DNA of 64,000 nucleotides, from assembly GCA_047495785.1 (NCBI GenBank), contig JBLDXI010000012.1:744001-808000 (forward strand), given 5' to 3'. How positions within the stretch are numbered: position 1 is the stretch's first letter; each line of letters begins with the position of its first letter. This stretch comes from Lepidodermella squamata (taxonomy: Eukaryota; Animalia; Gastrotricha). Positions 40,388-60,374 of this stretch are shown piece by piece. Position numbers and translations under genes: made by a program. A model generated the notes under the pieces. The model searched no databases and had not been told where the DNA came from. It saw nothing but the letters and a program-made list of their open reading frames with translations.

Positions 40388-40469
40388 CAATTTTCTTAGT
40401 TTCCAAAAAGATACTTGATTAGATACAGTAATCTAAGAACTCAAGCTAGCTCATCTTTTTTCCTGCTTT

Positions 40470-41110: not shown

Positions 41111-41127
41111 ACACATCTCGTGAGAGT
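41111..41127 (+). other. PacBio barcoded adapter remnant (bc1003 + T overhang)
   Basis: ACACATCTCGTGAGAGT sits exactly at a chimeric junction and is absent from the mirror arm. Identified from memory of the PacBio barcode set. Confidence 0.85.
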
Positions 41128-41493: not shown

Positions 41494-41756
41494 GTGCGAA
41501 TAGTAAATGGCCGGGCATCATGCAACGCTCCATCGCACTACAACCTGTCGCTACCGTCTTACCTTTCAACAACAGCTCTTCGACCTAATTTGGTCAGTTT
41601 ATTTTATTTATATAATGCCTTTGTTATTTATTCATTCCTAATCAGAAGGTTCTGGGGCTCAGCAACTCCAACCAATCACCGCGGCCGGCTTCCGTCATTC
41701 GATCATTTTTCATTTCAAACGCAAGAACTTTGAATATTATTCTTCTTACTGAATTT

Positions 41757-42185
41757 ATGGAAGCTTTCTTCAATTCATCTCCGGCTTCTCCATTGTTTTT
41801 TTCTAACAATGATTTCGTACCAATAAACCTGAATGAACCGAATACGAGTACGTTTACCAAGGAACCTGTTGAACAAACATCAGCCTCTAGATTAGCAAAA
41901 ACTGCGGTTCGTAATCAACCGAAACGCAATGCTAAACATAAAATTCAGAAAAAAGTCATAGGTACTGAGAAGAAATCAGTTGCTAAATCGGCGAAAACGC
42001 CATGCAAGGCGAAAAATAAACCAGCTGTTCCAATTACCAATCATGAGTCACGAAAGCAAGATTCTGTCGCCTCTTTTTTGGTCATGATTTGCCCTCAACC
42101 TATCGCAAAGTTCAAACAGAAACAGCTGAAATCAAGTATGTTACAAGCCTTCAATCAGCCGCATCACAGTCGACCACGATCATAA
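41757..42185 (+). CDS. Lys-rich basic Polinton protein (left copy)
   Basis: 142-aa ATG ORF with KRNAKHKIQKK...AKSAKTPCKAKNKP. Confidence 0.5.
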   Translation: MEAFFNSSPASPLFFSNNDFVPINLNEPNTSTFTKEPVEQTSASRLAKTAVRNQPKRNAKHKIQKKVIGTEKKSVAKSAKTPCKAKNKPAVPITNHESRKQDSVASFLVMICPQPIAKFKQKQLKSSMLQAFNQPHHSRPRS

Positions 42186-42268
42186 ATTTGACTATATCCT
42201 ATCCTGTTGATTTAAAGCTACAATCTAGCACTGAACCTTTTTTTCTATTGAAATCCCCACCATTAAAT

Positions 42269-42867
42269 ATGGAAGTAAATAATATACAATATGATATTGA
42301 TTACTCTATTTCAAATATTATGGCTAAATCAAGGTCAAATTTTCTATTTAATTTAGATAGTCTAGCCCTAATTTTACCTTGTGCAAAATATACCCAAAAA
42401 AAATGTCGAGTGCTTTGTTCTATAAAGTACCTGCTTTTAACGCGACGTTTTTATTATTTTCATCCGGAGCTATAATTTGTAGTGGTACCAAAACAGCCTC
42501 GAATTGTGTTACTGCTTTTGGAGTTCTTCAAGCTACACTCAGAAAAATTGTTAATCGACGGTTGATAATCCGTGACCCAATAATTACTAATATAGTATTG
42601 TTCTACGATTTACATAAAACTGTCAATCTTAGCCTGCTAGCTTTTCAATTTCCTAAAATATGCGTTTACCAACCAGAATTTTTTCCTGGGTTGCGTATAC
42701 GTGTTTTCTCCAAAGTCAGCACTAATGAAAATGAACCAAAGTTAAATGTATCTGCCACACTGTTTCACACTGGAAAAATGATTATGAGCGGCTGTTTTTC
42801 GTTATCTCTTATAAAAATAGCATTTGTTAAATTGGCGCCTTTTTTTCTGTATATCAAACAACAATAA
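42269..42867 (+). pseudogene. TBP-like gene, left-arm copy with a 1-bp deletion at ~42392 (possibly a consensus error)
   Basis: tatacccaaa here versus tataacccaaa in the mirror arm, which splits the ORF in two. Confidence 0.75.
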
Positions 42868-43031
42868 AATGATTTAATGAATGAGGGAAGATTAATCGCG
42901 TGCCGTCTTTTTTTAAGCTAAAATCATTATTTCTACTTTCATCATTATCTATCAATTTTCAAAATTCGCAGCAGAAATAAAAATATGGCTATCGGTAAAT
43001 TTCCCCGTTTTTAAAGTCTTCGTAATTTATT

Positions 43032-43301
43032 ATGCATCAAACAACAGATATTCCGCGTGCTGTTTTACCGATCCTATTGCTGCTATCCCTGGTTACCATT
43101 TTAATCAGCTTTTTCGCTGTTATGGAAGTTCGCAATACTCAAGCCGAACTCCTTCACCTGCGGCAACTTGTCGAGTCTACTGAGCGGATGTTATATAATA
43201 TAAATGATTTATTATTCCACTTAAACGGTGATTTATTTAGCCACATGGCTAATTGTTCGGTTGTCCCTACTTGCCGTAAATTAGCTATAAAGAAGAATTA
43301 G
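43032..43301 (+). CDS. Small membrane-anchored coiled-coil protein (left copy)
   Basis: Hydrophobic AVLPILLLLSLVTILISFFAVM followed by a heptad-like helix. Ends 3 bp before the integrase ATG. Confidence 0.55.
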   Translation: MHQTTDIPRAVLPILLLLSLVTILISFFAVMEVRNTQAELLHLRQLVESTERMLYNINDLLFHLNGDLFSHMANCSVVPTCRKLAIKKN

Positions 43302-43304
43302 GTC

Positions 43305-44516
43305 ATGCCACGTAATAAACACAATGCGAGACGTCTAGCTGAAGGAGATGCTAAAATAAACCACAGGTCAGACTTGAAATCGTTTGTTTTGAGCTTCTAT
43401 AATGATCCGAAACATGTTGGATCATTTCAAGGCCTGCGCAGATTATACTCAACACTTAAAGCTACATTACCCTTAGAGCTGAGAAATTCCCTTACTCATA
43501 AAAAACTAGCTGAGATTATGAGCCATGATCGAACATATTCATTATATAAACCACTAAGTGTAAGAAACCGGAAGCAATTCATGCAATATGAAGTTTATGC
43601 TAGAAGTGACCTCTTTCTAGGTGATCTTCTTGAAGTTCAAGATTCAAGCCAAGATAATGATGGAACCCGCTATTTACTTACAATCAAAGACTGTTTTACG
43701 CGTTATGCTTTCTGTATTCCCTTACTTAACAAAGAAGGAAATTACACTGCTGAGAAGATCAGTAATTTTTTGAGCAGCCTAACACCTGATTTGCGTTGCC
43801 GCTCTTTCACTACAGATTCTGGCGGAGAATTTATCAACAAAGAAGCTAAAAAAATATTTAAAAAATTCAATGTTTATTATTACACTACAACCTCCATGTT
43901 CAAGTGTTCACCCATAGAAATTTTCAACCGTTGGCTTCGTAGAACTATTTCGAGGCATCAAATTGCAAATCATACGCTGCGTTACATCGATTACTTACCT
44001 TTTTTCTTAGCGTCTTACAATCAAATGAAAAATCGCAGCACTAGGGTTGCCCCGTTAGAATTATGGCTAGCTTCCCCAGAAGATCCTATAAATTTGGTTG
44101 CTTACAATAATGTTTTTGGAAAAAGAGATCAATTGATGCTTGAAAAGCGCAAGAATTTACTATACAAACCGACTTTTTCTGTCGGTGATTGTGTTAGAAT
44201 TAGTCGTGTAAAGGATTTATTTCACAAAGAAGGAGATTTCATTTTTACTGAAGAATATTTTTTTATCGACCGCATAGATACTTGTACCATCCCCGACAAG
44301 TATTATCTCCGTGATACTCTGAATAAGCGTATTCAAGGTAGTTTTTACGATTGGCAGCTTCAGATAGCACATCCGCAAGAAACATATTTAATAGAAAAAG
44401 TTCTGAAGCATCGCACTATAAATGGCAAGAAACAGGCTCTTGTGAAATGGCAAAACTGGCCGATTGAAGCCGCTAGTTGGATTGATGCAAACGAGATCAA
44501 AACCTTGGCCTCATGA
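43305..44516 (+). CDS. Polinton retroviral-type (rve) integrase with C-terminal chromodomain (left copy)
   Basis: DDE triad in FLGDLL, FTTDSGGEF and SPIEIFNR. Also YLLTIKDCFTRYA, FSVGDCVRIS and chromodomain YLIEKVLKHR...LVKWQNWP...SWI. Confidence 0.95.
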   Translation: MPRNKHNARRLAEGDAKINHRSDLKSFVLSFYNDPKHVGSFQGLRRLYSTLKATLPLELRNSLTHKKLAEIMSHDRTYSLYKPLSVRNRKQFMQYEVYARSDLFLGDLLEVQDSSQDNDGTRYLLTIKDCFTRYAFCIPLLNKEGNYTAEKISNFLSSLTPDLRCRSFTTDSGGEFINKEAKKIFKKFNVYYYTTTSMFKCSPIEIFNRWLRRTISRHQIANHTLRYIDYLPFFLASYNQMKNRSTRVAPLELWLASPEDPINLVAYNNVFGKRDQLMLEKRKNLLYKPTFSVGDCVRISRVKDLFHKEGDFIFTEEYFFIDRIDTCTIPDKYYLRDTLNKRIQGSFYDWQLQIAHPQETYLIEKVLKHRTINGKKQALVKWQNWPIEAASWIDANEIKTLAS

Positions 44517-44716
44517 ATAGAGTTCCTACGACTCCACTCTTAGCTTTCCTACAAAAGCCATCTGTGCGTGTAGGGGCCTACATTTTTTTCCTTCTAATAA
44601 CCGTTTGGCTTATAGAAATTTCAAACTATTTATTCAAAACTAAGCTCCCCCCTTTTGGCAACAGCGCAATCCTTACTTTAGAAAAGATAGATAAGGATAA
44701 CATAACAAATGCTTAG
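44513..44716 (+). CDS. Small single-TM protein (left copy)
   Basis: VGAYIFFLLITVWLIEI. Overlaps the integrase stop (ATGA) and the penton start. Confidence 0.5.
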   Translation: MNRVPTTPLLAFLQKPSVRVGAYIFFLLITVWLIEISNYLFKTKLPPFGNSAILTLEKIDKDNITNA

Positions 44717-45929
44717 CATCCAGGAGGACTTCTTTATTTATTTACCCTCGAATGCCTCATATTCTCAACATCCGGCGAATACTCCGTCGGATTATCAAGT
44801 TGCTCTCCCTGTCCCAATTTGCGTACCCGATTGCCGTGCTTATGAAGTAGCCCTACTTGAGGCTACAATTCCTGTTAGGTGGAGTAGCATTGATCGTCAT
44901 ACAGTCTATGTGCTTGATTGTAACTGGCTGAAATCTTTTAAAAACGACATTATTGCTAATTATTTAACAAATCCTGGCTCTTTGCCACATCGGATGAAAA
45001 GTTTCAACAATCCATGGGAAACTGGCTTTATTAACAAAGTAAATTTCGGAGGTGAATATTTTGCGAATATAACCAAACTAATCGATCACTTTAATGAAAA
45101 AATATCCATCTCAAGTAGTAATGGCTCTATTTTTGCTCATTATGATTCAGTCAACAAAAAAACTAAAATTACCTGTAAATGGCCATATTCTATGTTTATA
45201 CCTTCAGATTCTGCTGGCCTCTTAGGTTTTGTGTCTCCAATAGAACAGAATACACCGTCTGGAGTTTTCATTTTTCCCAAGGCCCCAAAAAATGACGAGC
45301 CAGAATTTAATGAAGTTTCCACTTTTGATATAAAGTCAACGTATGCCTTGGCATATGCGTGGAATATGAGCCACCAAATTCGTGAAAATCCACACATTTT
45401 ATTCAACTCAGTTGGGATTGTTAGGCTTTCTAGCAGACCAAAACTTAAGGAGGATGCAAATAATGAGACAGCGGCGGTAGAAAATCAAGAAGGCGTAAAT
45501 TCAGCACAGCACTTTGATTTTTCTGAGCAAACAGTAATCACCAAAGATAATGATTTACCGCCTGCCTTTATTTATGCATGCTATGAAGAAAGTGCTACAG
45601 CTCAATACAACATTCAGTTGAATTATGGCAATAACTCACTGTTCATTTACTGCTCAGTTGCAGCGGATGTTTTTGTTGGAGATTGCCAAGCTAGCCTCCT
45701 TCGAATGATAACCTATTCTACGATGGCTTCTGCTACGGCAAATTCAGACTTGTCATCACATTTTACAGTGATTTATAACTCGGGCCTATATTTACCTTTA
45801 AAAGCCAATTTTATAGATTCAATTCAAGTTCAAATCCGCCGCGATAACGGGGCATTGATCGATTTTGTGGATGGTAGCAAAGTTGTATTGCTACTTCATA
45901 TTCGCCGAAAAACCGGAGCCTTATATTAA
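44709..45929 (+). CDS. Polinton minor capsid protein/penton (left copy)
   Basis: N-terminal FFIYLPSNAS..HPANTPSDYQVALP...YEVAL and C-terminal LFIYCSV...VGD...LLR...YLPL...IDSIQVQIRRDNG.LIDF...VLLLHIR, typical of Polinton single jelly-roll mCP. Confidence 0.85.
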   Translation: MLSIQEDFFIYLPSNASYSQHPANTPSDYQVALPVPICVPDCRAYEVALLEATIPVRWSSIDRHTVYVLDCNWLKSFKNDIIANYLTNPGSLPHRMKSFNNPWETGFINKVNFGGEYFANITKLIDHFNEKISISSSNGSIFAHYDSVNKKTKITCKWPYSMFIPSDSAGLLGFVSPIEQNTPSGVFIFPKAPKNDEPEFNEVSTFDIKSTYALAYAWNMSHQIRENPHILFNSVGIVRLSSRPKLKEDANNETAAVENQEGVNSAQHFDFSEQTVITKDNDLPPAFIYACYEESATAQYNIQLNYGNNSLFIYCSVAADVFVGDCQASLLRMITYSTMASATANSDLSSHFTVIYNSGLYLPLKANFIDSIQVQIRRDNGALIDFVDGSKVVLLLHIRRKTGALY

Positions 45930-45967
45930 TATAAGTGGCTGAGTTCTAATTATTAATATTACCGAAG

Positions 45968-46510
45968 ATGCCCCTAGCTTATTCTAACCAAAACGTTGAC
46001 AAGTACCAGCAGTTTTTTCTCCGCCAACACTCCTCCCCGCTGATAGCAGGCTATGGAGCTGGAGCGGGTGCTAACCTGGACCATTTCCGTGGGGCAACAA
46101 TTCAATTTCCATATCATTATAGGGGTCAGGGAATAGGAAATATATTAGGTGCCTTTTTCAGAAATTTCTTCCCAGTAATTGCTCCGTCTATTTTTCAACA
46201 AGCATTATCTACTGGCCAAAAAATATTAGGTGATATGCAACAACCTGAGGGCGCTAGACCTAGTTTTACCGAATCCCTTAAGCGTCATGGCACTTCAGGC
46301 GCCTTAAACATGGCTAAGGATATTGCTGAAACGGCTTTGAAGCAACATCAAGGCGGTGGAGGTGGCCGTAAAAGGCGCCGTCGTCGTGGCCCTAGTAAAA
46401 CTAGTAGTGTGACTGCAAAACGTAGGCGCCGTGCTTCTACTACAAAAAGAAAGGCTTATAAAAGGAAAAGACGCGCAACAACTAAATCAGTGCTATTTGA
46501 AGCGTCTTGA
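45968..46510 (+). CDS. Polinton pre-core/membrane-lytic-like protein with Arg/Lys-rich tail (left copy)
   Basis: RGQGIGNILGAFFRNFFP amphipathic motif, Gly-rich putative adenain cleavage sites and an RKRRRRR...KRRRR tail. Lies just upstream of the MCP. Confidence 0.7.
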   Translation: MPLAYSNQNVDKYQQFFLRQHSSPLIAGYGAGAGANLDHFRGATIQFPYHYRGQGIGNILGAFFRNFFPVIAPSIFQQALSTGQKILGDMQQPEGARPSFTESLKRHGTSGALNMAKDIAETALKQHQGGGGGRKRRRRRGPSKTSSVTAKRRRRASTTKRKAYKRKRRATTKSVLFEAS

Positions 46511-46543
46511 GCCCATTGCTGCGTTTGATTCTTCAAATTTGTA

Positions 46544-46993
46544 ATGGAAGGCTTTGGAGATAATTTTGTTCACCCAGCCTCAGCCTCTTCAATAGTATTA
46601 TCTTCAGATTTAGATTTATTTACTGTACCGCCTTCACAGCTTGCTGAAGAAAACCAAATAAGTATAGATGTTTACCCAATTGCCCCTCTTAATAGTTCAC
46701 CGAACCTGATTGAGTTTCAAATCGGCCCGTACAATGATTATTTGTGTCTGTCACGCATGCAACTGATGCTCAAGTGGAAAGTAGTTAGAACCCCTTCTGA
46801 AGCTCGGAAGAAAAATGCTGGCGAAGCTGACGATGCATACAACGAGTATAAGGCTAGTCTTTCGGCTACAAATTTACAAAAAGCCCCGCTTTGTTTAGCC
46901 CACCACACAATGTTCAAAACATGCGAGATTTCACTAAATGGGCAACTTTTAAGTGAACAAAATTATCTCCAAAGCCTTCCATTACAAATTTGA
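46544..46993 (+). pseudogene. Major capsid protein (double jelly-roll) N-terminus, truncated at the fold-back (~46953-46966)
   Basis: SDLDLFTVPPSQ...YPIAPL...IEFQI...YLCLS...HTMFKTCEISLNGQLLS, typical Polinton MCP N-terminal motifs. It then reads into the reverse complement of its own start. Confidence 0.85.
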
Positions 46994-47015
46994 AGAATCA
47001 AACGCAGCAATGGGC

Positions 47016-47558
47016 TCAAGACGCTTCAAATAGCACTGATTTAGTTGTTGCGCGTCTTTTCCTTTTATAAGCCTTTCTTTTTGTAGTAGAAGCACGGCGC
47101 CTACGTTTTGCAGTCACACTACTAGTTTTACTAGGGCCACGACGACGGCGCCTTTTACGGCCACCTCCACCGCCTTGATGTTGCTTCAAAGCCGTTTCAG
47201 CAATATCCTTAGCCATGTTTAAGGCGCCTGAAGTGCCATGACGCTTAAGGGATTCGGTAAAACTAGGTCTAGCGCCCTCAGGTTGTTGCATATCACCTAA
47301 TATTTTTTGGCCAGTAGATAATGCTTGTTGAAAAATAGACGGAGCAATTACTGGGAAGAAATTTCTGAAAAAGGCACCTAATATATTTCCTATTCCCTGA
47401 CCCCTATAATGATATGGAAATTGAATTGTTGCCCCACGGAAATGGTCCAGGTTAGCACCCGCTCCAGCTCCATAGCCTGCTATCAGCGGGGAGGAGTGTT
47501 GGCGGAGAAAAAACTGCTGGTACTTGTCAACGTTTTGGTTAGAATAAGCTAGGGGCAT
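47016..47558 (-). CDS. Pre-core/basic protein (right copy)
   Basis: Identical translation to 45968-46510. Confidence 0.7.
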   Translation of the reverse strand: MPLAYSNQNVDKYQQFFLRQHSSPLIAGYGAGAGANLDHFRGATIQFPYHYRGQGIGNILGAFFRNFFPVIAPSIFQQALSTGQKILGDMQQPEGARPSFTESLKRHGTSGALNMAKDIAETALKQHQGGGGGRKRRRRRGPSKTSSVTAKRRRRASTTKRKAYKRKRRATTKSVLFEAS

Positions 47559-47596
47559 CTTCGGTAATATTAATAATTAGAACTCAGCCACTTATA

Positions 47597-48817
47597 TTAA
47601 TATAAGGCTCCGGTTTTTCGGCGAATATGAAGTAGCAATACAACTTTGCTACCATCCACAAAATCGATCAATGCCCCGTTATCGCGGCGGATTTGAACTT
47701 GAATTGAATCTATAAAATTGGCTTTTAAAGGTAAATATAGGCCCGAGTTATAAATCACTGTAAAATGTGATGACAAGTCTGAATTTGCCGTAGCAGAAGC
47801 CATCGTAGAATAGGTTATCATTCGAAGGAGGCTAGCTTGGCAATCTCCAACAAAAACATCCGCTGCAACTGAGCAGTAAATGAACAGTGAGTTATTGCCA
47901 TAATTCAACTGAATGTTGTATTGAGCTGTAGCACTTTCTTCATAGCATGCATAAATAAAGGCAGGCGGTAAATCATTATCTTTGGTGATTACTGTTTGCT
48001 CAGAAAAATCAAAGTGCTGTGCTGAATTTACGCCTTCTTGATTTTCTACCGCCGCTGTCTCATTATTTGCATCCTCCTTAAGTTTTGGTCTGCTAGAAAG
48101 CCTAACAATCCCAACTGAGTTGAATAAAATGTGTGGATTTTCACGAATTTGGTGGCTCATATTCCACGCATATGCCAAGGCATACGTTGACTTTATATCA
48201 AAAGTGGAAACTTCATTAAATTCTGGCTCGTCATTTTTTGGGGCCTTGGGAAAAATGAAAACTCCAGACGGTGTATTCTGTTCTATTGGAGACACAAAAC
48301 CTAAGAGGCCAGCAGAATCTGAAGGTATAAACATAGAATATGGCCATTTACAGGTAATTTTAGTTTTTTTGTTGACTGAATCATAATGAGCAAAAATAGA
48401 GCCATTACTACTTGAGATGGATATTTTTTCATTAAAGTGATCGATTAGTTTGGTTATATTCGCAAAATATTCACCTCCGAAATTTACTTTGTTAATAAAG
48501 CCAGTTTCCCATGGATTGTTGAAACTTTTCATCCGATGTGGCAAAGAGCCAGGATTTGTTAAATAATTAGCAATAATGTCGTTTTTAAAAGATTTCAGCC
48601 AGTTACAATCAAGCACATAGACTGTATGACGATCAATGCTACTCCACCTAACAGGAATTGTAGCCTCAAGTAGGGCTACTTCATAAGCACGGCAATCGGG
48701 TACGCAAATTGGGACAGGGAGAGCAACTTGATAATCCGACGGAGTATTCGCCGGATGTTGAGAATATGAGGCATTCGAGGGTAAATAAATAAAGAAGTCC
48801 TCCTGGATGCTAAGCAT
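47597..48817 (-). CDS. Minor capsid/penton (right copy)
   Basis: Identical translation to 44709-45929. Confidence 0.85.
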   Translation of the reverse strand: MLSIQEDFFIYLPSNASYSQHPANTPSDYQVALPVPICVPDCRAYEVALLEATIPVRWSSIDRHTVYVLDCNWLKSFKNDIIANYLTNPGSLPHRMKSFNNPWETGFINKVNFGGEYFANITKLIDHFNEKISISSSNGSIFAHYDSVNKKTKITCKWPYSMFIPSDSAGLLGFVSPIEQNTPSGVFIFPKAPKNDEPEFNEVSTFDIKSTYALAYAWNMSHQIRENPHILFNSVGIVRLSSRPKLKEDANNETAAVENQEGVNSAQHFDFSEQTVITKDNDLPPAFIYACYEESATAQYNIQLNYGNNSLFIYCSVAADVFVGDCQASLLRMITYSTMASATANSDLSSHFTVIYNSGLYLPLKANFIDSIQVQIRRDNGALIDFVDGSKVVLLLHIRRKTGALY

Positions 48818-49013
48818 TTGTTATGTTATCCTTATCTATCTTTTCTAAAGTAAGGATTGCGCTGTTGCCAAAAGGGGGGAGCTTAGTTTTGAATAAATAG
48901 TTTGAAATTTCTATAAGCCAAACGGTTATTAGAAGGAAAAAAATGTAGGCCCCTACACGCACAGATGGCTTTTGTAGGAAAGCTAAGAGTGGAGTCGTAG
49001 GAACTCTATTCAT
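48810..49013 (-). CDS. Small single-TM protein (right copy)
   Basis: Identical translation to 44513-44716. Confidence 0.5.
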   Translation of the reverse strand: MNRVPTTPLLAFLQKPSVRVGAYIFFLLITVWLIEISNYLFKTKLPPFGNSAILTLEKIDKDNITNA

Positions 49014-50221
49014 GAGGCCAAGGTTTTGATCTCGTTTGCATCAATCCAACTAGCGGCTTCAATCGGCCAGTTTTGCCATTTCACAAGAGCCTGTTTCTTG
49101 CCATTTATAGTGCGATGCTTCAGAACTTTTTCTATTAAATATGTTTCTTGCGGATGTGCTATCTGAAGCTGCCAATCGTAAAAACTACCTTGAATACGCT
49201 TATTCAGAGTATCACGGAGATAATACTTGTCGGGGATGGTACAAGTATCTATGCGGTCGATAAAAAAATATTCTTCAGTAAAAATGAAATCTCCTTCTTT
49301 GTGAAATAAATCCTTTACACGACTAATTCTAACACAATCACCGACAGAAAAAGTCGGTTTGTATAGTAAATTCTTGCGCTTTTCAAGCATCAATTGATCT
49401 CTTTTTCCAAAAACATTATTGTAAGCAACCAAATTTATAGGATCTTCTGGGGAAGCTAGCCATAATTCTAACGGGGCAACCCTAGTGCTGCGATTTTTCA
49501 TTTGATTGTAAGACGCTAAGAAAAAAGGTAAGTAATCGATGTAACGCAGCGTATGATTTGCAATTTGATGCCTCGAAATAGTTCTACGAAGCCAACGGTT
49601 GAAAATTTCTATGGGTGAACACTTGAACATGGAGGTTGTAGTGTAATAATAAACATTGAATTTTTTAAATATTTTTTTAGCTTCTTTGTTGATAAATTCT
49701 CCGCCAGAATCTGTAGTGAAAGAGCGGCAACGCAAATCAGGTGTTAGGCTGCTCAAAAAATTACTGATCTTCTCAGCAGTGTAATTTCCTTCTTTGTTAA
49801 GTAAGGGAATACAGAAAGCATAACGCGTAAAACAGTCTTTGATTGTAAGTAAATAGCGGGTTCCATCATTATCTTGGCTTGAATCTTGAACTTCAAGAAG
49901 ATCACCTAGAAAGAGGTCACTTCTAGCATAAACTTCATATTGCATGAATTGCTTCCGGTTTCTTACACTTAGTGGTTTATATAATGAATATGTTCGATCA
50001 TGGCTCATAATCTCAGCTAGTTTTTTATGAGTAAGGGAATTTCTCAGCTCTAAGGGTAATGTAGCTTTAAGTGTTGAGTATAATCTGCGCAGGCCTTGAA
50101 ATGATCCAACATGTTTCGGATCATTATAGAAGCTCAAAACAAACGATTTCAAGTCTGACCTGTGGTTTATTTTAGCATCTCCTTCAGCTAGACGTCTCGC
50201 ATTGTGTTTATTACGTGGCAT
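49010..50221 (-). CDS. Integrase-chromodomain (right copy)
   Basis: Identical translation to 43305-44516. Confidence 0.95.
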   Translation of the reverse strand: MPRNKHNARRLAEGDAKINHRSDLKSFVLSFYNDPKHVGSFQGLRRLYSTLKATLPLELRNSLTHKKLAEIMSHDRTYSLYKPLSVRNRKQFMQYEVYARSDLFLGDLLEVQDSSQDNDGTRYLLTIKDCFTRYAFCIPLLNKEGNYTAEKISNFLSSLTPDLRCRSFTTDSGGEFINKEAKKIFKKFNVYYYTTTSMFKCSPIEIFNRWLRRTISRHQIANHTLRYIDYLPFFLASYNQMKNRSTRVAPLELWLASPEDPINLVAYNNVFGKRDQLMLEKRKNLLYKPTFSVGDCVRISRVKDLFHKEGDFIFTEEYFFIDRIDTCTIPDKYYLRDTLNKRIQGSFYDWQLQIAHPQETYLIEKVLKHRTINGKKQALVKWQNWPIEAASWIDANEIKTLAS

Positions 50222-50224
50222 GAC

Positions 50225-50494
50225 CTAATTCTTCTTTATAGCTAATTTACGGCAAGTAGGGACAACCGAACAATTAGCCATGTGGCTAAATAAATCACCG
50301 TTTAAGTGGAATAATAAATCATTTATATTATATAACATCCGCTCAGTAGACTCGACAAGTTGCCGCAGGTGAAGGAGTTCGGCTTGAGTATTGCGAACTT
50401 CCATAACAGCGAAAAAGCTGATTAAAATGGTAACCAGGGATAGCAGCAATAGGATCGGTAAAACAGCACGCGGAATATCTGTTGTTTGATGCAT
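50225..50494 (-). CDS. Small membrane-anchored protein (right copy)
   Basis: Identical translation to 43032-43301. Confidence 0.55.
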   Translation of the reverse strand: MHQTTDIPRAVLPILLLLSLVTILISFFAVMEVRNTQAELLHLRQLVESTERMLYNINDLLFHLNGDLFSHMANCSVVPTCRKLAIKKN

Positions 50495-50658
50495 AATAAA
50501 TTACGAAGACTTTAAAAACGGGGAAATTTACCGATAGCCATATTTTTATTTCTGCTGCGAATTTTGAAAATTGATAGATAATGATGAAAGTAGAAATAAT
50601 GATTTTAGCTTAAAAAAAGACGGCACGCGATTAATCTTCCCTCATTCATTAAATCATT

Positions 50659-51258
50659 TTATTGTTGTTTGATATACAGAAAAAAAGGCGCCAATTTAAC
50701 AAATGCTATTTTTATAAGAGATAACGAAAAACAGCCGCTCATAATCATTTTTCCAGTGTGAAACAGTGTGGCAGATACATTTAACTTTGGTTCATTTTCA
50801 TTAGTGCTGACTTTGGAGAAAACACGTATACGCAACCCAGGAAAAAATTCTGGTTGGTAAACGCATATTTTAGGAAATTGAAAAGCTAGCAGGCTAAGAT
50901 TGACAGTTTTATGTAAATCGTAGAACAATACTATATTAGTAATTATTGGGTCACGGATTATCAACCGTCGATTAACAATTTTTCTGAGTGTAGCTTGAAG
51001 AACTCCAAAAGCAGTAACACAATTCGAGGCTGTTTTGGTACCACTACAAATTATAGCTCCGGATGAAAATAATAAAAACGTCGCGTTAAAAGCAGGTACT
51101 TTATAGAACAAAGCACTCGACATTTTTTTTGGGTTATATTTTGCACAAGGTAAAATTAGGGCTAGACTATCTAAATTAAATAGAAAATTTGACCTTGATT
51201 TAGCCATAATATTTGAAATAGAGTAATCAATATCATATTGTATATTATTTACTTCCAT
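50659..51258 (-). CDS. Polinton-encoded TATA-binding protein (TBP) homolog, 199 aa from the first ATG, intact and intronless
   Basis: Two TBP repeats: ISNIMA...FNLDSLA...AKYNPKKM...TFLLFSSGAIICSGTK and ITNIV...VNLSLLA...YQPEFFPGL...ATLFHTGKMIMSG (cf. TBP NIVS/YNPKRF/LIFSSGKMVCTGAK and NMVG/YEPELFPGL/LIFVSGKVVLTG). Confidence 0.92.
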   Translation of the reverse strand: MEVNNIQYDIDYSISNIMAKSRSNFLFNLDSLALILPCAKYNPKKMSSALFYKVPAFNATFLLFSSGAIICSGTKTASNCVTAFGVLQATLRKIVNRRLIIRDPIITNIVLFYDLHKTVNLSLLAFQFPKICVYQPEFFPGLRIRVFSKVSTNENEPKLNVSATLFHTGKMIMSGCFSLSLIKIAFVKLAPFFLYIKQQ

Positions 51259-51341
51259 ATTTAATGGTGGGGATTTCAATAGAAAAAAAGGTTCAGTGCT
51301 AGATTGTAGCTTTAAATCAACAGGATAGGATATAGTCAAAT

Positions 51342-51770
51342 TTATGATCGTGGTCGACTGTGATGCGGCTGATTGAAGGCTTGTAACATACTTGATTTCA
51401 GCTGTTTCTGTTTGAACTTTGCGATAGGTTGAGGGCAAATCATGACCAAAAAAGAGGCGACAGAATCTTGCTTTCGTGACTCATGATTGGTAATTGGAAC
51501 AGCTGGTTTATTTTTCGCCTTGCATGGCGTTTTCGCCGATTTAGCAACTGATTTCTTCTCAGTACCTATGACTTTTTTCTGAATTTTATGTTTAGCATTG
51601 CGTTTCGGTTGATTACGAACCGCAGTTTTTGCTAATCTAGAGGCTGATGTTTGTTCAACAGGTTCCTTGGTAAACGTACTCGTATTCGGTTCATTCAGGT
51701 TTATTGGTACGAAATCATTGTTAGAAAAAAACAATGGAGAAGCCGGAGATGAATTGAAGAAAGCTTCCAT
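51342..51770 (-). CDS. Lys-rich basic protein (right copy)
   Basis: Mirror of 41757-42185. Confidence 0.5.
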   Translation of the reverse strand: MEAFFNSSPASPLFFSNNDFVPINLNEPNTSTFTKEPVEQTSASRLAKTAVRNQPKRNAKHKIQKKVIGTEKKSVAKSAKTPCKAKNKPAVPITNHESRKQDSVASFLVMICPQPIAKFKQKQLKSSMLQAFNQPHHSRPRS

Positions 51771-51938
51771 AAATTCAGTAAGAAGAATAATATTCAAAGT
51801 TCTTGCGTTTGAAATGAAAAATGATCGAATGACGGAAGCCGGCCGCGGTGATTGGTTGGAGTTGCTGAGCCCCAGAACCTTCTGATTAGGAATGAATAAA
51901 TAACAAAGGCATTATATAAATAAAATAAACTGACCAAA

Positions 51939-52745
51939 TTAGGTCGAAGAGCTGTTGTTGAAAGGTAAGACGGTAGCGACAGGTTGTAGTGCGATGGAGC
52001 GTTGCATGATGCCCGGCCATTTACTATTCGCACCTTCCTGCTGACCATTAAGAACATCGATGACTGATGCCCATGGAATTTTCTGAGCGTGTTGATAGGG
52101 TGGAGGTACGACGTTCTGCATTTCTACTGAGACCCTACGACCTGCCCGAAGTAAAAGGTAGAATATGTGCCGCAGGTTTACGCTGACACCATTAAAGTTT
52201 TTTAACAAATCGTAAAATAAATGTTGGATGTAGATATATCGGCCTTCGGTGTAGGTAGGGTGTGCCGTTAGGCCATACCAGAAACTTTCTTCCAGGCCAG
52301 ACACAATAATAGGGTTAGGGCTATCGTCGAGGCAATCATCCAAAAGGTAATCACTTTCAGTAAAAATAATTGAGTGACAAATGGACGACCATAAATCATC
52401 CTGGCGAACAAGGAGCGTGGTAGTATCATTTAGGATGCTCTTCCATAAATCATGCCCAACGATGGAAGCACAGGTAGCTAAATTATATTCGGCAAAATGT
52501 TGAAAATTCGTGCCATCGTGGGTTGATGGGAAGAGACGAGCAACGGCTCTTTTGTAGCCGAGATAAACATGATCGATAGTAATATGTTGGCCTTTCGAGT
52601 TGGCAATCAAATCGAATATGGCGACTTCAGCGAATGTAATGCGTCCAGAGAGGGTATTTAGTGATATATTTAATGATTTCGGAGGAAAAAGTAAATCTTC
52701 TCGGTAGAAAATCGCTTCATAAGATTCATCATAGCCAATAATCAT
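51939..52745 (-). CDS. Uncharacterised 268-aa Polinton accessory protein (intact copy)
   Basis: Long ATG ORF in AT-rich DNA, downstream of the TATA-containing repeat. Globular composition, no motif recognised. Confidence 0.65.
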   Translation of the reverse strand: MIIGYDESYEAIFYREDLLFPPKSLNISLNTLSGRITFAEVAIFDLIANSKGQHITIDHVYLGYKRAVARLFPSTHDGTNFQHFAEYNLATCASIVGHDLWKSILNDTTTLLVRQDDLWSSICHSIIFTESDYLLDDCLDDSPNPIIVSGLEESFWYGLTAHPTYTEGRYIYIQHLFYDLLKNFNGVSVNLRHIFYLLLRAGRRVSVEMQNVVPPPYQHAQKIPWASVIDVLNGQQEGANSKWPGIMQRSIALQPVATVLPFNNSSST

Positions 52746-53138
52746 AGCAACTTATTTGACCTTGCTATCCCTACCTTAATCTTTGCTTTTATTCGATTTT
52801 CCTTGAGTAAAAAAATGTTTCTTATATTTTTTAGATTACAGTTAAGTTGGATTGATAGGAGAAAGTAAAGTTTATTTACAAAACAAGTTAATGGACATAT
52901 CAGGAAAGAAAGGAGTATTTATAAATGCTAATGGCCAAAGTAAAAAATATTTATTATATTTTAGATTAAAGTTAAGGGGGATTGATAGGAGAAAGTAATG
53001 TTTATTTACAAAAAAGGTTAATGGAAAGTAAGGTGTATTTATATAAGCTAATGGACAAAGCAGGAAAAAAGATGAGCTAGCTTGAGTTCTTAGATTACTG
53101 TATCTAATCAAGTATCTTTTTGGAAACTAAGAAAATTG

Positions 53139-53414
53139 ATGGAAGCAGAAGACATGTAAGTTTGGTTCTTTTTTAAAAAATCTTGAATAAATTCTGTTAT
53201 GTTTAGTCGTGAACGCTTATATCAAGCACTGCTAAGCATTGACCATCTGCAACGAGCAATGACAGCAGCTATAAACGAAATGTTGAACACACAATTGGAG
53301 GTTGAACAATTGATCAATGATGCATCACGATTTATGATAGCAACTCGAGCAAGAGATCAGGCATGCAGCCTAGATTGTGGTGATTGGAATTGTAATTACT
53401 GTTACAAAGATTGA
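53139..53414 (+). CDS. Small spliced Polinton protein MEAEDI|RERLY...CSLDCGDWNCNYC
   Basis: ATG at 53139. A 51-bp intron 53156-53206 (GTAAGT...TTTAG) joins in frame to the 71-aa ORF. Confidence 0.6.
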
Positions 53415-53782
53415 AAAATTAAAAATAAATTATCATGTGTGCATTTTTTATATTACAAATTAATTCCCAGAAAGAATGCAAAAGCATGACTCATAATAGT
53501 TTTAGAAAAAAAGTATGCCCGCTGTATATTTTATCATAAACATTGCGTACATTTATGGGGCAATGGATAAAACGCACTTATATATTTATGTGAAACGGTT
53601 ATAGTAAAAATGACCGTAGTGCTATTACTGATACAACGCTCGTATATTTATGCCAAATGGCTATAGTAAAAATCGCCGTACTGCCATTACTGATCCCAAA
53701 TTGCGTATATTTATACCAAACGGCTATAGTAAAAATCGCCGTACTGCCATTACTGATCCAAAGTTCCCATCCTTACTACTAA

Positions 53783-54497
53783 TGAGTTGGCTATATTCTC
53801 ACCTTTCCATAAATCCCACGGATTGAAATTCGCCGAGCAGAGTCATGTTTGCTGTACAAACCTTGTTTACATTTCGTATTAAACCCAATCAAAGCTGATA
53901 TGTGTTAAGCCTTACCTGTAAATCAAACGGGAAAGAGCGCAGTATTAGGTTGCATGTCAGGTCCCAAGTTGAGTACAACCACATGATTGCCTCGCCATTG
54001 GAAACGATTGAAACCGGCGACTTTTCCATCAAATCCCTCAAATCATCCATATTAATCATGTTCTTAACCGCAATTTTCGGGGTCCAAGTTCCCGCCTGTC
54101 CTTTATTCAGTGTTATCGACGTTATGTTGCAGTAATCGCCGGGGTCCCAGGTATAACCCAGGGGTGCGGCATTCCAAGTCAAACTGAACCCCCCAGTGAC
54201 TGAATTAGAAAATAATTTAAAAAAATTAGAAATTCAATCAAACAAACGTGAAATCGAATTTTCCTGCTCGTTGATGCCTTGAAGGGAGACGAGGAAAAAT
54301 GTTGAAATTAGTGTTACCATTCTTCCATCAGGACTGATTGGAGGAACGTTTATGTTCGACATGGTTGAGTCCTTCAAGTCATCCATTAATTTTCTTCTCA
54401 CATACAAATTAGCCAATCCTCTGCTTGAACAATTAAGGCCGTCAGCCCTGACCCCGGTAAGTATCACAGCTAGTGTCAGAATTCGGACTAAAATCAT
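53783..54497 (-). pseudogene. Cys-loop LGIC gene A (type I), cut off after the Cys-loop by the Polinton end in an intron
   Basis: Signal peptide MILVRIL, VPP, WTPKIAV and Cys-loop CNLILRSFPFDLQ|VC. Donor GGAAAG|GTGAG lies ~22 bp before the element. No TM exons on the other flank. Confidence 0.8.
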
Positions 54498-54571
54498 GTT
54501 AGTTTCTGGAAAAATAACAAAACTGAAAGCTGAAATCATGTTTTTATTCTCTCTTTTCTTTAATTTCCGCG

Positions 54572-56427
54572 TCAACATTGCCAGAATTTGTAATTCGGCG
54601 GGTGATATTGCGTTCCGTTGATCGTGAATGTTCCATCGTCAATTCCTGTCGGCGCCGGAATCAGCTTCGAGTTATAAGATACGTAAAGGCCAATAACAAC
54701 CAGCCAAACAAGCGCAACCGCTAGCCCGTAGGCAATAATTCCAACATCGTTGACGAAATCAATTCTGCGCCGCAGTTTGATGTAATTTTCCAGCTTTTTC
54801 GCGCCTTCCGCCACCTCCGAGTCAACAGTATGCGCAGCTAGGGCTTTCAGCTGTTTTGACGCCGATCTGCCATAGTTGCTGTATACCGAAGTTCGAAATT
54901 CACTCGCTGATATTATCGATGTTTTGCTGTTGACTTCAGATGGACTTGTTTTATTGCTTTTCAAATTCGAGTTCTCTTTTATCTTGAATAAAGAACAGAA
55001 CTTCATTAGGTTTACCATGAAAACGAGCAAATAATCACCTCTTCCAATATCCATTTGAAGTCAAACTTCTTCTCGGTGTCTTTTACGTAGTCGGCGAGTC
55101 GTAATAAAATTGCGGCAAAAATCTGAAGAAATAATAATACGATTTAGAAAGAATTAGGGTGGAAATCGCAACTCACGCAAGCCAATGTTGTAACAATAAA
55201 CAGCATGAAAACAAGCTTGAGTAAATAAATTTTTCAGAAAATAGAGATACCTCAATAAGAATCGCCATACCCAATAAAACAAAGGTAAATCTTTTAATTC
55301 GGCAATTGGAGGCATGGACGAGGAGACACTTGCGAAAATGACTAAATTCAATTGTTAAGATGGATCAAATAGCTTTTCCCGAGTTAAGGAATTACCGAAA
55401 AAAGATAGCAGAACTGTGCAGGCGATGTTCATTTTTTCCTCGGAATCAGTTGGGTAGATGAAAATTGCGAAACCAGAAACAGTTAGGAGCAAAGTTGGGA
55501 CGATGATTCCTATCAAATGGAAGGAACTTCGGCGTTTAAATGCGAATTCAACAACAGCGAGATCGCCTAGACTATCGTCGTAGCTGCCAAAGTATCGCGT
55601 TCCTAAGAATTCCCATTGTGGATTGTCAGTGATTGTGTTCTAAGGTGGAATGTAATTGAAATTGAGGCATGAAAATTCAAAGAAAAAGCAGACCACAGAA
55701 CAAGAAGAACCACTATCCGGTGGGACAAATTTGATGAGATCCCACTCAGCTAAACAAGCAAAGCCGATGTAACAGATCTACACAAGGGACGGAATATTAT
55801 TTCCATACAGTGCAATGGGGTTTCTGAGTACCTGAGTATCAAACGGGTAGTTGTACATTCTCAGCCTAGCGAATGGAATCCTTGAAAAATGTGATGGAGT
55901 GATTTCGAAGAATTTACGCGCAAATTGCGTCGAAGGAATTGTAAAGACGCCAATGAGCCAGGCCGTATTCTATGCTAACTGTGGTCTTATCTTGAATGTC
56001 ATTCCAACCTTTTTAAGGGCGATGAATCATCTTTCAGCTATCATCGAAACAACTTACTAGCCAAGTTCTGAACGTTGTAGGGAACCAATTTAGGCACCCA
56101 CATTGAATCTTGCGGCTTGAAAATTGAGAAGGACATTTGTTTCAAGGTGGACGCATGATTACCAAGCAAAACTTCTGGCACGTTCCATTTAAGAGTCACG
56201 CCCAGCGTAAGCGAAACCAAGCTGCTTCTTTCCTCGACGTAGCCGATTGAAACGAAAAGAACAGATGTACTGACGTTAATAACTGCTTGATTGTCAGTCG
56301 GCGGGACGTTCGTATGCATGGACAGGCCAGTTAGAGCTGCAATGTAGTTTGGAACAGTGAAATTCTGTCCAGACACACGGAAATCAGACCAAAAACAGGC
56401 AGAGACAAGCAAAAACCTTCCGATCAT
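54572..56427 (-). CDS. Cys-loop LGIC gene B (type II), multi-exon
   Basis: VPPTD, WVPKLVP, YPFDTQ|IC, NPQWEFLG, AFKRR, M1 IVPTLLL, EEKMNIACTVLLSFF, M4 and C-terminal YHPPNYKFWQC. Confidence 0.85.
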
Positions 56428-56616
56428 TTTTCTTGATTTTATAAAAATTTCCTAAAATTTTTGAAAATTTGAAAATTGGTTGAAATTTTTGAAATTTTTT
56501 AATCTTTAAAAGTTCACAATGAATTTTATAAGAAATTTTAAAAAGTTTCATAATTGTTTGTGAAAATTTATTACAATTTTAAAAAATTATTTGAAAAATT
56601 CAAAAATGCAATATTA

Positions 56617-58375
56617 TCAGATTTCCTGTGCTGTAATTGTGCAATTCGCGGGTACAGCCGGTATATCACTGGATCTATCAAGACTGCATTGGTAAGAGCA
56701 ACTGTCATAGTTGGCAATTGGCTGAAAGAAGACTTTGTTCCTCATCATTATCAGTCCAGCCTGTCTATCGCCAGTCAAGGCCGTTGGTCTATCCGACTTC
56801 GAAGCAGTTAGGATCAGTGCGAAAAATACCAGCGAAATTAATAGGGCTGAGGATAGGTATAAAATTAGGCCGATGTTATTGACAGCGTTCAGGTATTTTG
56901 AGATTTTCTTCGCTTTCTTCTCGAGGGCAGCGACAACGTCGGGATCGGAGCCTTTTTTCGATTCACCCTCTGCAGCTTCAGTGTATTCCCTAACTCGACC
57001 GGTGAAGTGCAAAATCAGGGCAGAAAACATCGTTCCAAAAATTGTAGCGACAAAGAGACTCATCAAGTACTAATTTCGAAATTAAAATAAAAAAAAATCG
57101 AGAAAATGATGGAAAAACCCACGTAGTAAAGTAGAGGAATATCGGTAGCATTCGGTGGCAAAGAACTGATAACAGTTGAAAAAATGAAGAAAAAGGTCAG
57201 CAGAACCACAAAGCAGACTCCCATCTTCTCGCCACTACAATAAGGAATTGGATACAAATTTGATCAACAACTTTCGAAGTGACCTCTCAGGTGGAATTAT
57301 GAACATTGCAGCCCCGGAGAAAGCCAAAAGAACAGTTGGAATAACCAGGCTGAAAGGGAAATTCAAGAATAAATCGGAATCGATCACAAGAATTACCTAA
57401 GAAGATGAAATGTTGACCTTCTCTCCAAGATTAGTTGAATTCTAGAAAAAAAATTGAATTTTTTAAAAACAATAAGTATTTTTTTTTATAATTACGAGTA
57501 TATTCCTACGGAATATCCTTCGGTTGTCTCGCGGAGTAAATCACGTTCTGCAGCGGCCCTAGATCCGAGAAATCTCCACTGTGGATGGGGGATGTAGTTC
57601 GAAGCACAAATCGTCCTGATTTTTCTAAAATTCCGAATGAAGCAAAAAATTCCTCACAATTTGAATCTTCAGGCATACTTTTCGTTGAACTGGACGAACT
57701 CGTGTTCCGAAAGCAATGTAAAATTCGCCGCGCAAATCTGTTTTTGTCAAAAGAGGTCAAATTGAGGTCAAATCATTATTGCTCATAATACTTGGTAATC
57801 GAGAGGGAATGCGCGAAGTCTGAAGCTGCAGGCTAATTGGAAAGTATTGTAGAGTAGCATCTCAGCCCGGCCATCTGGGGTAACTTGAATCGGAGCTTTT
57901 TCAAGCATGTCTCGCCAGTCGTTGAGATTGATCATATTCAGCACCTGTAAATTCAATTTTTTTAATTTTTTTTTCAAAATTTGAATTATTTAATTACTGT
58001 AATTTTTGGGGTCCATACAGCGGCTTGGGCTTTATTCAACGTATAAATATTGGCGTTGCAATAATCCGAACTCGACCATGTGTAATTCAAAACCGTCACA
58101 TCCCAAATCAGAGACAATGCCCCAGAAATTGTTATCGTATTGCGTTGCTCGTCAACATTTTGGAAAGCAATCAGGTAAAACATCAAATCAACCGTTATTT
58201 CAGGAGACCCTCCATCGCCCATCACCACTGGAGGGATATTAGGAGAGTTGACAACATTGCTGCCGGTCAGAGTGTCTTTCAACGCTAGATAAGCGTTGAC
58301 ATTCGCCTTATTATTCGGGCAAGTTAACTGAGCCGAAATCAGCGGCAAAAATGTAACGAAAAACCAAATTAACAT
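56617..58375 (-). CDS. Cys-loop LGIC gene C (type I), multi-exon
   Basis: NIPP, VDEQRN, DYCN, WTPKITV, CSFRLRAFPLDYQ, HPQWRFLG, GEKMGVCFVVLLTFF, PPNATDIPLL, M4 and Cys-rich tail. Confidence 0.85.
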
Positions 58376-58736
58376 GGCTTCAATCCACTTGTTACAGAAA
58401 TTTTTATCAACAGATTGCGAATGGAATCATAAGTAATGCAAAGGAGCATCGATTTTATTGATCGGTAAAAAACATCTTGAACAAACGTATGATAGTCGCT
58501 ATTCATGCATTGTTAATTAAGAACCATTGTTCGACTCTTATTTGCGAGTTAGGCTGTCGTTAAGCTGGCTGTGATCGATTGTACACACTCTCCAAGCACA
58601 ATCCTAAAAATAATACCAACTCAGTTGAAGGTTCGTTCTTTCAACCTTCATATCTATGGTTCATTCGATTATTTTGTCAATTTATGCAATCAGCTTTGAA
58701 TAACAGATTGATCGAAAAATGTTCAGATTTTTATTC

Positions 58737-60344
58737 TTAGCATAGCCAAAATTGAAAGTTGGGTTTATGAAAAAGTTCGCCGTCAATCAAAAACTTTGAA
58801 TCATTTCGCTTTAGGTAGACTGGAGTCACCCTTTGCTCAGTTTTCGTATACAATCCGAAAATGACGGCACATATTGTCGTGGTTAAAATTCCATAAATTA
58901 TGATTGCGGCAAAATTAAGAACTGTCGAAGGTCGAATTCGCCTCGTTTCCTGTATTTTTCAGATGTTCAACTCAATTATAGATATTTTTGTAATTACGCT
59001 CATTGACGTTGCCTCTTGGAAGGCAAGACGTAAAGTAAACGCCGCCAAAACCTGAAATCGATGTAATCAAAATTATACCAAAAATTATATTTCGAAGTTA
59101 CCGTAGCTACGACTGTGGTAACAAAAAGACTGAATAAAAGCTGAAAAAAATGAAAAAAAAATTAAGGAGGATTTTTTCGAATCTTCAATTTTACCCAATA
59201 AAGCAGAGGCATTTCAGTTGGCGTAGATATAGCTGGCATAGATTCCGAAACTCCAGCGAAAACAACTGAAAAATTGGCGCTAATTAATCCGAAAGCATCA
59301 TTATTCCAGAAATTTACCGAAAAATGATAAAAGTACAGTGCATGAAATGTTCATTTTCTCCTCAGAATCGCTTGGGGTCACAAAAATTGCGAAACCCGAA
59401 ACAGCGAGAAGTATCGTTGGCAGAACAACGCTGACGAGATGAAAGGTTCCTCTTCTTCGAATGACGAAGCTTATTCTCGCTCGTTCGTAGCCACCAACAA
59501 TTGAAATGCGATAGTTGGAACCGAGAAATTCCCACTGCGGATGATCCAGAGCGGGTTCCTAAAGGTCCAGGAATTTTTCGGATGAAAGATGATTTTATTG
59601 CGCTTTTAACTCACAACTGCGCAAGACGCGTTTGAGTAAGGGTATTTAAAACGGACAATGTCCAAATCGGCAATGGCAGTCATCTCGATATAGCAAATCT
59701 GCATAATTAATTCAAAAATTGGTTTATTAGCAAAGACTCCAAGTACTCATACCTGGGTATCAAATGGGTAGTTGGCTAATTGCAACCTGAAAAAATGAGA
59801 ATTGAAACCTGAGCGAACAAGGGATCTTATGACTTTGCGCTCTCACCTGCATGAAAGTTGAAATGGCGAAAATAATCTCCACTCAGCAATTCTATCTAAA
59901 TCAACGTTAATTGGAGCCTTGTCCATGCAATCGCGCCAATCTTCAAATTTCGAATATTTTTGAGAAATTGTAGCTGAAACTATAGCCTCAACTATTACCG
60001 TGAAGATTCAGAGAATTTACCGGGACAATTTTAGGCGTCCAAATGGTGTCTTGTGGCTTGGCGACCGCAAATCCCAGAGTAGATGGCCGCCCATTGAACA
60101 TAGTCGAAGGTAGTTTCCATTTCAAAGAAACCGATGCTGAAATTGATATTGTGTTGCTCTTCTCATCGACGTCTCCAAAGGCCGTGAAAATGATACCAAA
60201 GGTCACTTCGATCTCGTTATTCGAGTCAACCGGCGGAACGTCGATGTCCATTTCTTTAATTGAATTAATGTCCCGAGATTGAGACGCGAACATCTCGTTA
60301 TTGCCAGAAACCATTTGAAAATATAATAGTAATAAAGGCAACAT
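58737..60344 (-). CDS. Cys-loop LGIC gene D (type II), multi-exon
   Basis: DVPP, VDEKSN, WTPKIVP, YPFDTQ|IC, HPQWEFLG, IRRR, EEKMNISCTVLLSFF and tail FHKPNFQFWLC*. Confidence 0.85.
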
Positions 60345-60374
60345 CTAATAATTTTTAATTTTAATAATTTGTGG

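Follow-up and report, generated by a model that had tools for sequence, protein, structure and literature searches.

Lepidodermella squamata (Gastrotricha) carries a gene for a TATA-binding protein (TBP) inside a block that resembles a Maverick or Polinton. The DNA analysed, hereafter the window, is a stretch of 64,000 nucleotides (nt) from contig JBLDXI010000012.1 (assembly GCA_047495785.1, positions 744,001 to 808,000 of the forward strand). The gene occupies window positions 50659-51258 on the minus strand, and its sequence and modelled fold mark it as a genuine member of the TBP family, with two repeats and with most of the DNA-contact columns retained. The reading favoured here, tentatively and at a little short of an even chance, is that it encodes a working, highly divergent TBP paralogue, carried as an accessory gene by a Maverick/Polinton-like element for which it would act as a private basal transcription factor. 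Polintons and Mavericks are thought to depend wholly on host transcription, and an element-borne TBP with its DNA face kept, but with one kinking residue and the stirrup changed, would offer a testable handle on Polinton gene switching. If the reading is true, virus-encoded TBPs extend from giant viruses to small integrase-bearing animal elements, a hint that some of the machinery for starting transcription can travel with virus-like elements.

The open reading frame (ORF) is intact from ATG to TAA over 199 codons, and the same frame stays open for a further 60 codons upstream, to position 51438. The number of open frames expected by chance per window is about 0.3 at 199 codons and 0.005 at 259 codons; an open frame of 199 codons is not by itself rare enough to serve as evidence. 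The primary evidence for TBP identity is the hidden Markov model (HMM) score, with the Pfam TBP family (PF00352) matching the ORF at 86.5 bits (E = 1.1e-24; cut-off 22.9) in two stretches that correspond to the two repeats. A sequence search of the PDB returned 35 distinct TBP sequences and no other kind of protein, the best matches being Pyrococcus TBPs (about 2e-19), with eukaryotic TBPs at 1e-13 to 1e-9. An alignment of 77 sequences (A1), comprising the window TBP and its best database relatives, was used for an AlphaFold model, which reaches a predicted local distance difference test score (pLDDT) of 93.9 and a predicted template modelling score (pTM) of 0.85. The model contains the saddle fold, two alpha/beta repeats with a curved sheet, and its top 44 Foldseek matches in the PDB are all TBP chains (TM-score 0.80-0.91, root mean square deviation about 2.2-2.5 Å, 24-28% identity). 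Because the model rests on a TBP alignment, this result is confirmation rather than independent proof. An earlier reading of the bare sequence (the original prediction) had described an intact two-repeat TBP and proposed that it be checked by HMM and by structure prediction against the TBP fold; both checks agree with it. The protein is basic (pI 9.7), with 22 Lys and Arg residues against nine Asp and Glu.

All three invariant and all 13 near-invariant columns of A1 are kept by the window TBP, and Asn16, Asn108, Phe64, Phe139 and Phe166 stand in columns that are invariant or at least 90% conserved. The near-invariant columns kept include the Tyr-x-Pro-Glu-x-Phe-Pro stretch of repeat 2. Where one residue occurs in at least 70% of relatives, the window TBP keeps it in 26 of 36 columns, and the ten departures include Met46 (Phe in 88% of relatives), Met18 (Val, 83%), Phe57 (Pro, 86%), Ala68 (Lys, 79%), Gln135 (Glu, 83%), and Thr164 (Leu, 83%). 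The roles of the Phe residues in kinking DNA and of the stirrup in contacting TFIIB are established from TBP-DNA and TBP-TFIIB crystal structures. Three of the four DNA-kinking columns hold Phe (64, 139, and 166) and the fourth, position 46, holds Met. The minor-groove Asn pair, one per repeat, is complete (Asn16 and Asn108, each in a column at least 90% conserved). In the repeat-2 stirrup Glu137 is kept and position 135 is Gln. Positions 150-159 form a 10-residue insertion that has no counterpart in most relatives and lies, in the model, between two repeat-2 strands. These features had all been predicted, namely both DNA-contacting Asn kept, three of four Phe kept with the fourth changed to Met, a stirrup altered from YEPEL to YQPEF, and an insertion in repeat 2, and all are borne out by the alignment. 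The kept residues, together with the pI, suggest that the window TBP may bind TATA DNA sequence-specifically and bend it.

The relatives of the window TBP are distant. A word-indexed search of 5.8 billion proteins gave a single weak match (P0001, 30% identity). A full HMMER search of 1.84 billion representative proteins returned 1196 TBPs at an E of 0.001 or less, but not one at 1e-30 or less. The best match scored 92 bits, and the best 150 of the 1196 are 25-40% identical over the matched stretches; near-identity to a host TBP or TBP-related factor (TRF), named in the original prediction as telling against it, was looked for and does not appear among these 150. The top ten matches are archaeal TBPs and metagenome proteins, one labelled plant scoring as archaeal. 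The protein P0002 (KAK4492228.1, labelled Penstemon davidsonii, 376 amino acids (aa)) reaches 366 bits on an archaeal TBP model with two full matches, and in the P. davidsonii assembly it is probably archaeal contamination or a transfer. An archaeal origin of the window TBP, hinted at by the top PDB matches, was dropped, the archaeal TBP models of NCBIfam (NF001592-NF001601) giving only 50-70 bits, far under their cut-offs of 181-347. The nearer neighbours by BLASTP include a Blastocystis protein (P0056), which was considered as the 'TBP' of a published Blastocystis virus and proved to be an ordinary cellular Blastocystis TBP among housekeeping genes. In an all-against-all comparison of 152 TBPs, the window TBP ranks as the fourth most isolated.

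Virus-encoded proteins with the TBP fold are found among the Nucleocytoviricota, including the Heterosigma akashiwo virus putative TBP, EsV-1-53, the mimivirus-type 'TFIID', and the asfarvirus B263R homologs. These giant-virus proteins are the best matches of the window TBP in the viral structure library, yet they are only 7-21% identical to it (TM-score 0.4-0.75), many are longer fusions, and the window TBP is nearer to cellular TBPs, with the PDB values given above. Nucleocytoviricota viruses also carry their own RNA polymerase, whereas the window element has no polymerase subunit. Among the 150 best matches in the 1.84 billion representatives identity is at most 37%; the window TBP is therefore no recent copy of a host TBP or TRF, and as far as sequence can tell it does not belong to any known viral TBP group either. 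This orphan position gives the TBP family a deep branch that had not been sampled.

The gene lies in a palindromic block at 39743-53783, in which two arms of 6831 nt surround a loop of 379 nt between unrelated host flanks. Genes of the left arm (39743-46573, plus strand) read from the terminus to the centre, the unique loop (46574-46952, plus) holds most of a cut ORF resembling that of a major capsid protein (MCP), and in the right arm (46953-53783, minus) all eight ORFs are open. From the outer end inward each arm carries tandem repeats, a 268-codon ORF, a 151-codon ORF, TBP, an 89-codon ORF, an integrase of 403 aa, a small overlapping ORF, an ORF of 406 aa, and one of 180 aa. The eight co-oriented ORFs cover 92% of 46953-52745, with gaps of -8 to 164 nt. 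First inward of the terminus is the 268-aa ORF (51939-52745, minus; twin at 40781-41588, plus, broken by one rearrangement). The Lys-rich ORF of 151 codons (51342-51797, minus; identical twin at 41730-42185, plus) lies just upstream of TBP and overlaps its open 5' extension at 51342-51438 in another frame; if the overlap hides a splice site or a mistake in base calling, they may belong to a single gene with a basic N-terminal part and the TBP core.

Position and composition both tie TBP to the integrase-bearing unit. The gene sits in the 3.6 kb that separate the terminal repeats from the integrase, 83 and 164 nt from its co-oriented neighbours. As predicted (about 440 bp), it is on the same strand as the integrase and upstream of it, at 437 nt, and most of this gap is occupied by the ORF of 89 aa (50225-50494, minus; identical twin at 43032-43301, plus), which has one hydrophobic segment. 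The GC content at third codon positions (GC3) of TBP is 0.24, the lowest in the block, with 0.32-0.42 in the other element ORFs and 0.42-0.61 in twelve flanking host ORFs. Relative synonymous codon usage (RSCU) of TBP correlates at 0.69 with the pooled other element genes, against -0.17 and 0.27 with the two flanks, and the integrase shows the same pattern (0.67 against -0.04 and 0.27). These values support TBP as compositionally part of the integrase-bearing unit, in accord with its predicted place within the element. Nematode Mavericks carry cargo genes in the same slot between terminus and integrase, and that cargo is described as GC-rich and intron-bearing; the TBP gene is neither, which suggests long residence in the element.

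The integrase (49010-50221, minus; identical twin at 43305-44516, plus) is a stand-alone protein with an rve core and a C-terminal chromodomain. Its Pfam scores are 29.6 bits for chromo, over the cut-off, and 25.5 bits for rve, under the cut-off of 32.6. Five stand-alone integrase relatives at 26-32% identity all carry PF00665, three of the five also have a chromodomain, and the triad D107, D171, and E205 is invariant across the integrase and all five. By these residues and domains it is judged to be of the right kind for a Polinton, that is, a retrovirus-type rve integrase. Animal Polintons and Mavericks (polintoviruses, adintoviruses) likewise have a stand-alone rve integrase with a chromodomain, packed, intronless and co-oriented genes, and an accessory-gene slot between terminus and integrase; they also have terminal repeats, which the tandem array at the block ends resembles.

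The genes inward of the integrase are less easily placed. The 406-aa ORF (47597-48817, minus; identical twin at 44709-45929, plus) gave no match in word-indexed, Pfam (also at E<=1), PHROGs or PDB sequence searches, and a single-sequence AlphaFold model of it was unusable (pLDDT 30.6). The 180-aa ORF (47016-47558, minus; identical twin at 45968-46510, plus) has an Arg/Lys-rich C-terminal third and looks core-protein-like by eye only. The MCP-like ORF (46544-46952, plus) starts in the arm, runs through the loop and is cut at the fold-back with 136 codons kept; it is present once and has no match. A resemblance to Polinton capsid proteins at both termini of the 406-aa ORF and in the first part of the MCP-like ORF is a lead only. 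For the 406-, 180-, 149/136-, 268-, 151-, 89-, and 67-codon ORFs, nothing usable came from Pfam (also at E<=1), PHROGs or PDB sequence searches. Gene order alone fits a capsid assignment, the 406-aa ORF lying one gene from the ORF at the MCP position, as is described for PX and MCP of Polintons (PMC4028283). The original prediction had named the three ORFs penton, core, and MCP; no tool supported any of these names, and the last ORF is a 136-codon stump.

In other respects the window copy is unlike a Polinton. No PF03175 match to a protein-primed DNA polymerase B (pPolB) was obtained in any scanned ORF of the block or of the remaining window, a result that applies to this copy, which breaks off among the capsid-side genes, and not to its parent element. 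Pfam scans found neither an FtsK-type packaging ATPase nor an adenain-type protease among the block ORFs. TBP itself lies outside the described Polinton core set. No duplicated target site of 5-6 bp (6 bp in Polintons) was found at the flanks (39742/39743 and 53783/53784) in any register tried. Because polymerase, ATPase, protease, and target-site duplication are missing and the capsid ORFs are unrecognized, the block is called Maverick/Polinton-like, and this copy is not filed as a Polinton member.

The original prediction also placed TBP in line with an integrase-penton-core-MCP block; the co-orientation of TBP and integrase holds, but the mirror duplication of 39743-53783 had gone unnoticed. 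There are no substitutions between the arms over 6831 nt. Apart from a single base of difference in length, they diverge in one stretch of about 370-380 nt, which in the left arm is an inverted copy of nearby sequence. This inverted replacement of about 370 nt (within 40781-41588) looks like a miniature of the large fold-back event. Three genes are broken in all: in the left arm the TBP twin (42269-42867, plus) by one frameshift and the 268-codon twin by its rearrangement, and the MCP-like gene by one truncation. Both arms stop at the same base against the unrelated flanks. Three tandem repeats of 62-63 nt (53579-53765; mirror copy at 39761-39947) begin 18 nt inside the outer end of the arm, and the array looks like a terminal repeat. 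The two block ends are identical since the whole arm is mirrored, and only one kind of element end is present. At the extreme ends of the block, 39743-39760 and 53766-53783, there is first a short reiterated trinucleotide; reiteration at termini is known from protein-primed linear genomes, and for these ends it is suggestive only. Scans for tRNA genes and Rfam families found nothing in the block. The window copy is no complete element but one folded-back end, broken off within the putative capsid gene, or else an assembly chimera.

Three explanations of the palindrome remain: a truncated linear genome that snapped back before integrating into the chromosome, a pair of inverted insertions brought together by a deletion, or an assembly chimera. 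Zero substitutions combined with length differences only lean towards a very recent event or an artefact, while the loop of 379 nt makes a simple strand-to-strand read chimera less likely. The layout is that expected from the snap-back of a truncated linear protein-primed genome. Incomplete adenovirus genomes, described in the older literature, carry one of their ends twice, as long inverted copies on either side of a short unique loop; they differ in being free defective genomes in particles, whereas the window palindrome lies between host genes and may be a product of assembly. The palindrome is a warning that the locus needs a raw-read check before it is built upon.

If the favoured reading of a private basal factor is correct, the TBP protein would enter the nucleus and bind AT-rich core-promoter DNA through its concave sheet, probably with a preference for a TATA variant, since repeat 1 has only one of its two kinking Phe left. 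On the compact, co-oriented genes of the element it would then seed the assembly of pre-initiation complexes with host RNA polymerase II (or III). The changed stirrup residue and the repeat-2 insertion could alter its partnership with TFIIB-type factors and host TBP regulators, and in this way host TBP control would lose part of its hold on transcription of the element.

Several observations weigh against this reading. The window TBP lacks a conserved Phe at position 46 and a conserved stirrup Glu at position 135, and these losses may weaken classical TATA and TFIIB binding. Giardia TBP, which is without the key Phe residues, is reported to bind DNA unconventionally (PMC12209930, in extract). 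Upstream of the nine element ORFs neither shared 7-8-mers nor TATA-like hexamers form a consistent pattern, and no common motif was found. The sole second copy of the gene is the twin in the other arm, identical apart from its one frameshift. The block copy lacks pPolB, ATPase, and protease, no sequence, family or structure match supports a capsid identity (double jelly-roll MCP, single jelly-roll penton), and the palindrome may be an assembly chimera. Finally, Maverick cargo genes need not serve the element that carries them.

This last point leads to the strongest alternative, considered unlikely, in which TBP is passenger or decoy cargo that was captured long ago and has no part in element promoters. 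It might be carried neutrally, or it might soak up TFIIA, TFIIB, NC2 or Mot1-type partners or occupy host TATA boxes. The position of the gene is that of the Maverick cargo slot, the altered stirrup and the insertion are on the partner-binding side of the protein, and polinton-like viruses carry many host-derived accessory genes (PMC8502044), all of which would suit a passenger, as would the failure to find an element-wide promoter motif. Neutral drift is spoken against by the conservation of every near-invariant TBP column, and the absence of introns, the lowest GC3 and the element-like codon pattern set the gene apart from the cargo of nematode Mavericks and point to long residence.

Somewhat less probable again is an artefact of assembly, whether from a chimeric or folded-back long read or because several copies were collapsed, with the palindrome, the host junctions and the integrated state all wrong. 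In that case the order terminus-TBP-integrase may still hold, and the element could be free viral or foreign DNA. Arms of 6.8 kb without substitutions are what such an error could give, and the length differences and the one inverted stretch are of the kind seen in long-read consensus errors. The missing target-site duplication fits as well, and an exact look-up of ten window proteins in a collection of 15 billion found none of them present, so there is no independent support from that source. On the other side, a unique loop of 379 nt is unlike the product of a strand-to-strand read chimera, the window sequence contains no N, and ordinary host genes stand on both flanks. TBP and its linkage to the integrase are on one uninterrupted stretch and would be untouched by such an error.

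A wider interpretation, that animal polintoviruses possess private promoter recognition through TBP, perhaps with the 151- and 268-codon ORFs, which would build separate pre-initiation complexes at element promoters in the manner of the herpesvirus late-gene complex, and that the palindrome is no assembly error but a footprint of very recent linear-genome replication in an animal, is regarded as doubtful. Least probable of all is a lineage-specific host TRF adjoining an integrase-bearing insertion and duplicated along with it: divergent TBP paralogues are known to arise in animals, the TRF family being one case (in reviews), the comparison set is without this host's own TBPs and the mobile-element status of the block is partly inferred, but the codon usage of TBP is unlike that of 12 of 12 flanking host ORFs, the gene is intronless while one host gene nearby is broken up into ORF segments separated by about 60-75 nt, it is packed between close co-oriented neighbours in a unit ending in terminal repeats, and no animal TBP, TRF2 or TRF3 representative is nearer than about 37% identity among the matches listed.

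The original prediction knew of no TBP described as a Polinton gene. In the literature searched no paper was found that reports TBP in an animal Polinton or Maverick, and to that extent the statement stands. It does not hold for polinton-related viruses at large, since figure legends in Starrett et al. (2021; PMC8502044; preprint 10.1101/697771) list TBP in such viruses from non-animal datasets. This is the only work in the literature searched, at the level of its legends, that ties TBP to polinton-related viruses, and the novelty of TBP in polinton-related viruses is lower than had been assumed. The viruses concerned, the mid-size linear dsDNA (MELD) viruses, have an adintovirus-like PolB and an annotated TBP-similar protein (PMC8502044, Fig. 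5 legend); they come from datasets of non-animal eukaryotes, and the likeness to the window element is one of description. No function for the MELD-virus TBP is proposed in that source. A mirusvirus-like algal element is also reported to carry TBP sporadically (PMC10675990, in extract). An ENA metagenome contig of 7578 nt (L001) has at 374-3603 an ORF for protein-primed PolB (PF03175, 122 bits) and, next to it, a TBP that is divergent and core-only (Pfam, 115 bits). By tblastn and gene content, TBP alone is in common between this contig and the window element.

Among better-known systems the herpesviruses offer a functional analogy only. Their TBP mimics drive late promoters (PMC12529657, PMC7498053, both in extract). 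Proteins of the KSHV (Kaposi's sarcoma-associated herpesvirus) ORF24 family, found in beta- and gammaherpesviruses, are virus-supplied TATA-type factors that steer host RNA polymerase II to late promoters, as reported in those extracts. Unlike the protein proposed here, the ORF24 family works in a six-protein viral complex and contacts RNA polymerase II directly, and no sequence or fold match between it and the window TBP appeared in the searches made. The TRF2/TLF proteins and Giardia TBP share with the window TBP a core-only or core-dominated two-repeat saddle and altered DNA-kinking residues. They have lost most of the key Phe residues (general knowledge for TRF2/TLF; PMC12209930, in extract, for Giardia), whereas the window TBP keeps three of four and both Asn, and it is no closer to them than to other TBPs.

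The host sequence around the block is of an ordinary kind. The left flank carries genes for a DBH-like monooxygenase, a carboxylesterase, a BRCT protein, and a USP-type protein, and the right flank has Cys-loop receptor genes in a tandem family. At 53889-64000, on that side, tandem units that are 72-85% identical to one another recur about every 3.8 kb; exons of their minus-strand genes match the neurotransmitter-gated ion-channel ligand-binding domain, and the array gives the impression that Cys-loop receptor genes have expanded locally. On the left, the DBH-like monooxygenase, with a DOMON domain and both copper monooxygenase domains, is encoded in an uninterrupted frame of 598 codons (14568-16364, minus). 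Within 13626-18628 it is flanked by plus-strand ORFs for the N- and C-terminal parts of a carboxylesterase, and it seems to lie nested within a carboxylesterase intron. A USP-type ubiquitin hydrolase at 26953-28126 is in three ORF pieces about 60-75 nt apart, from which it follows that host introns are very short.

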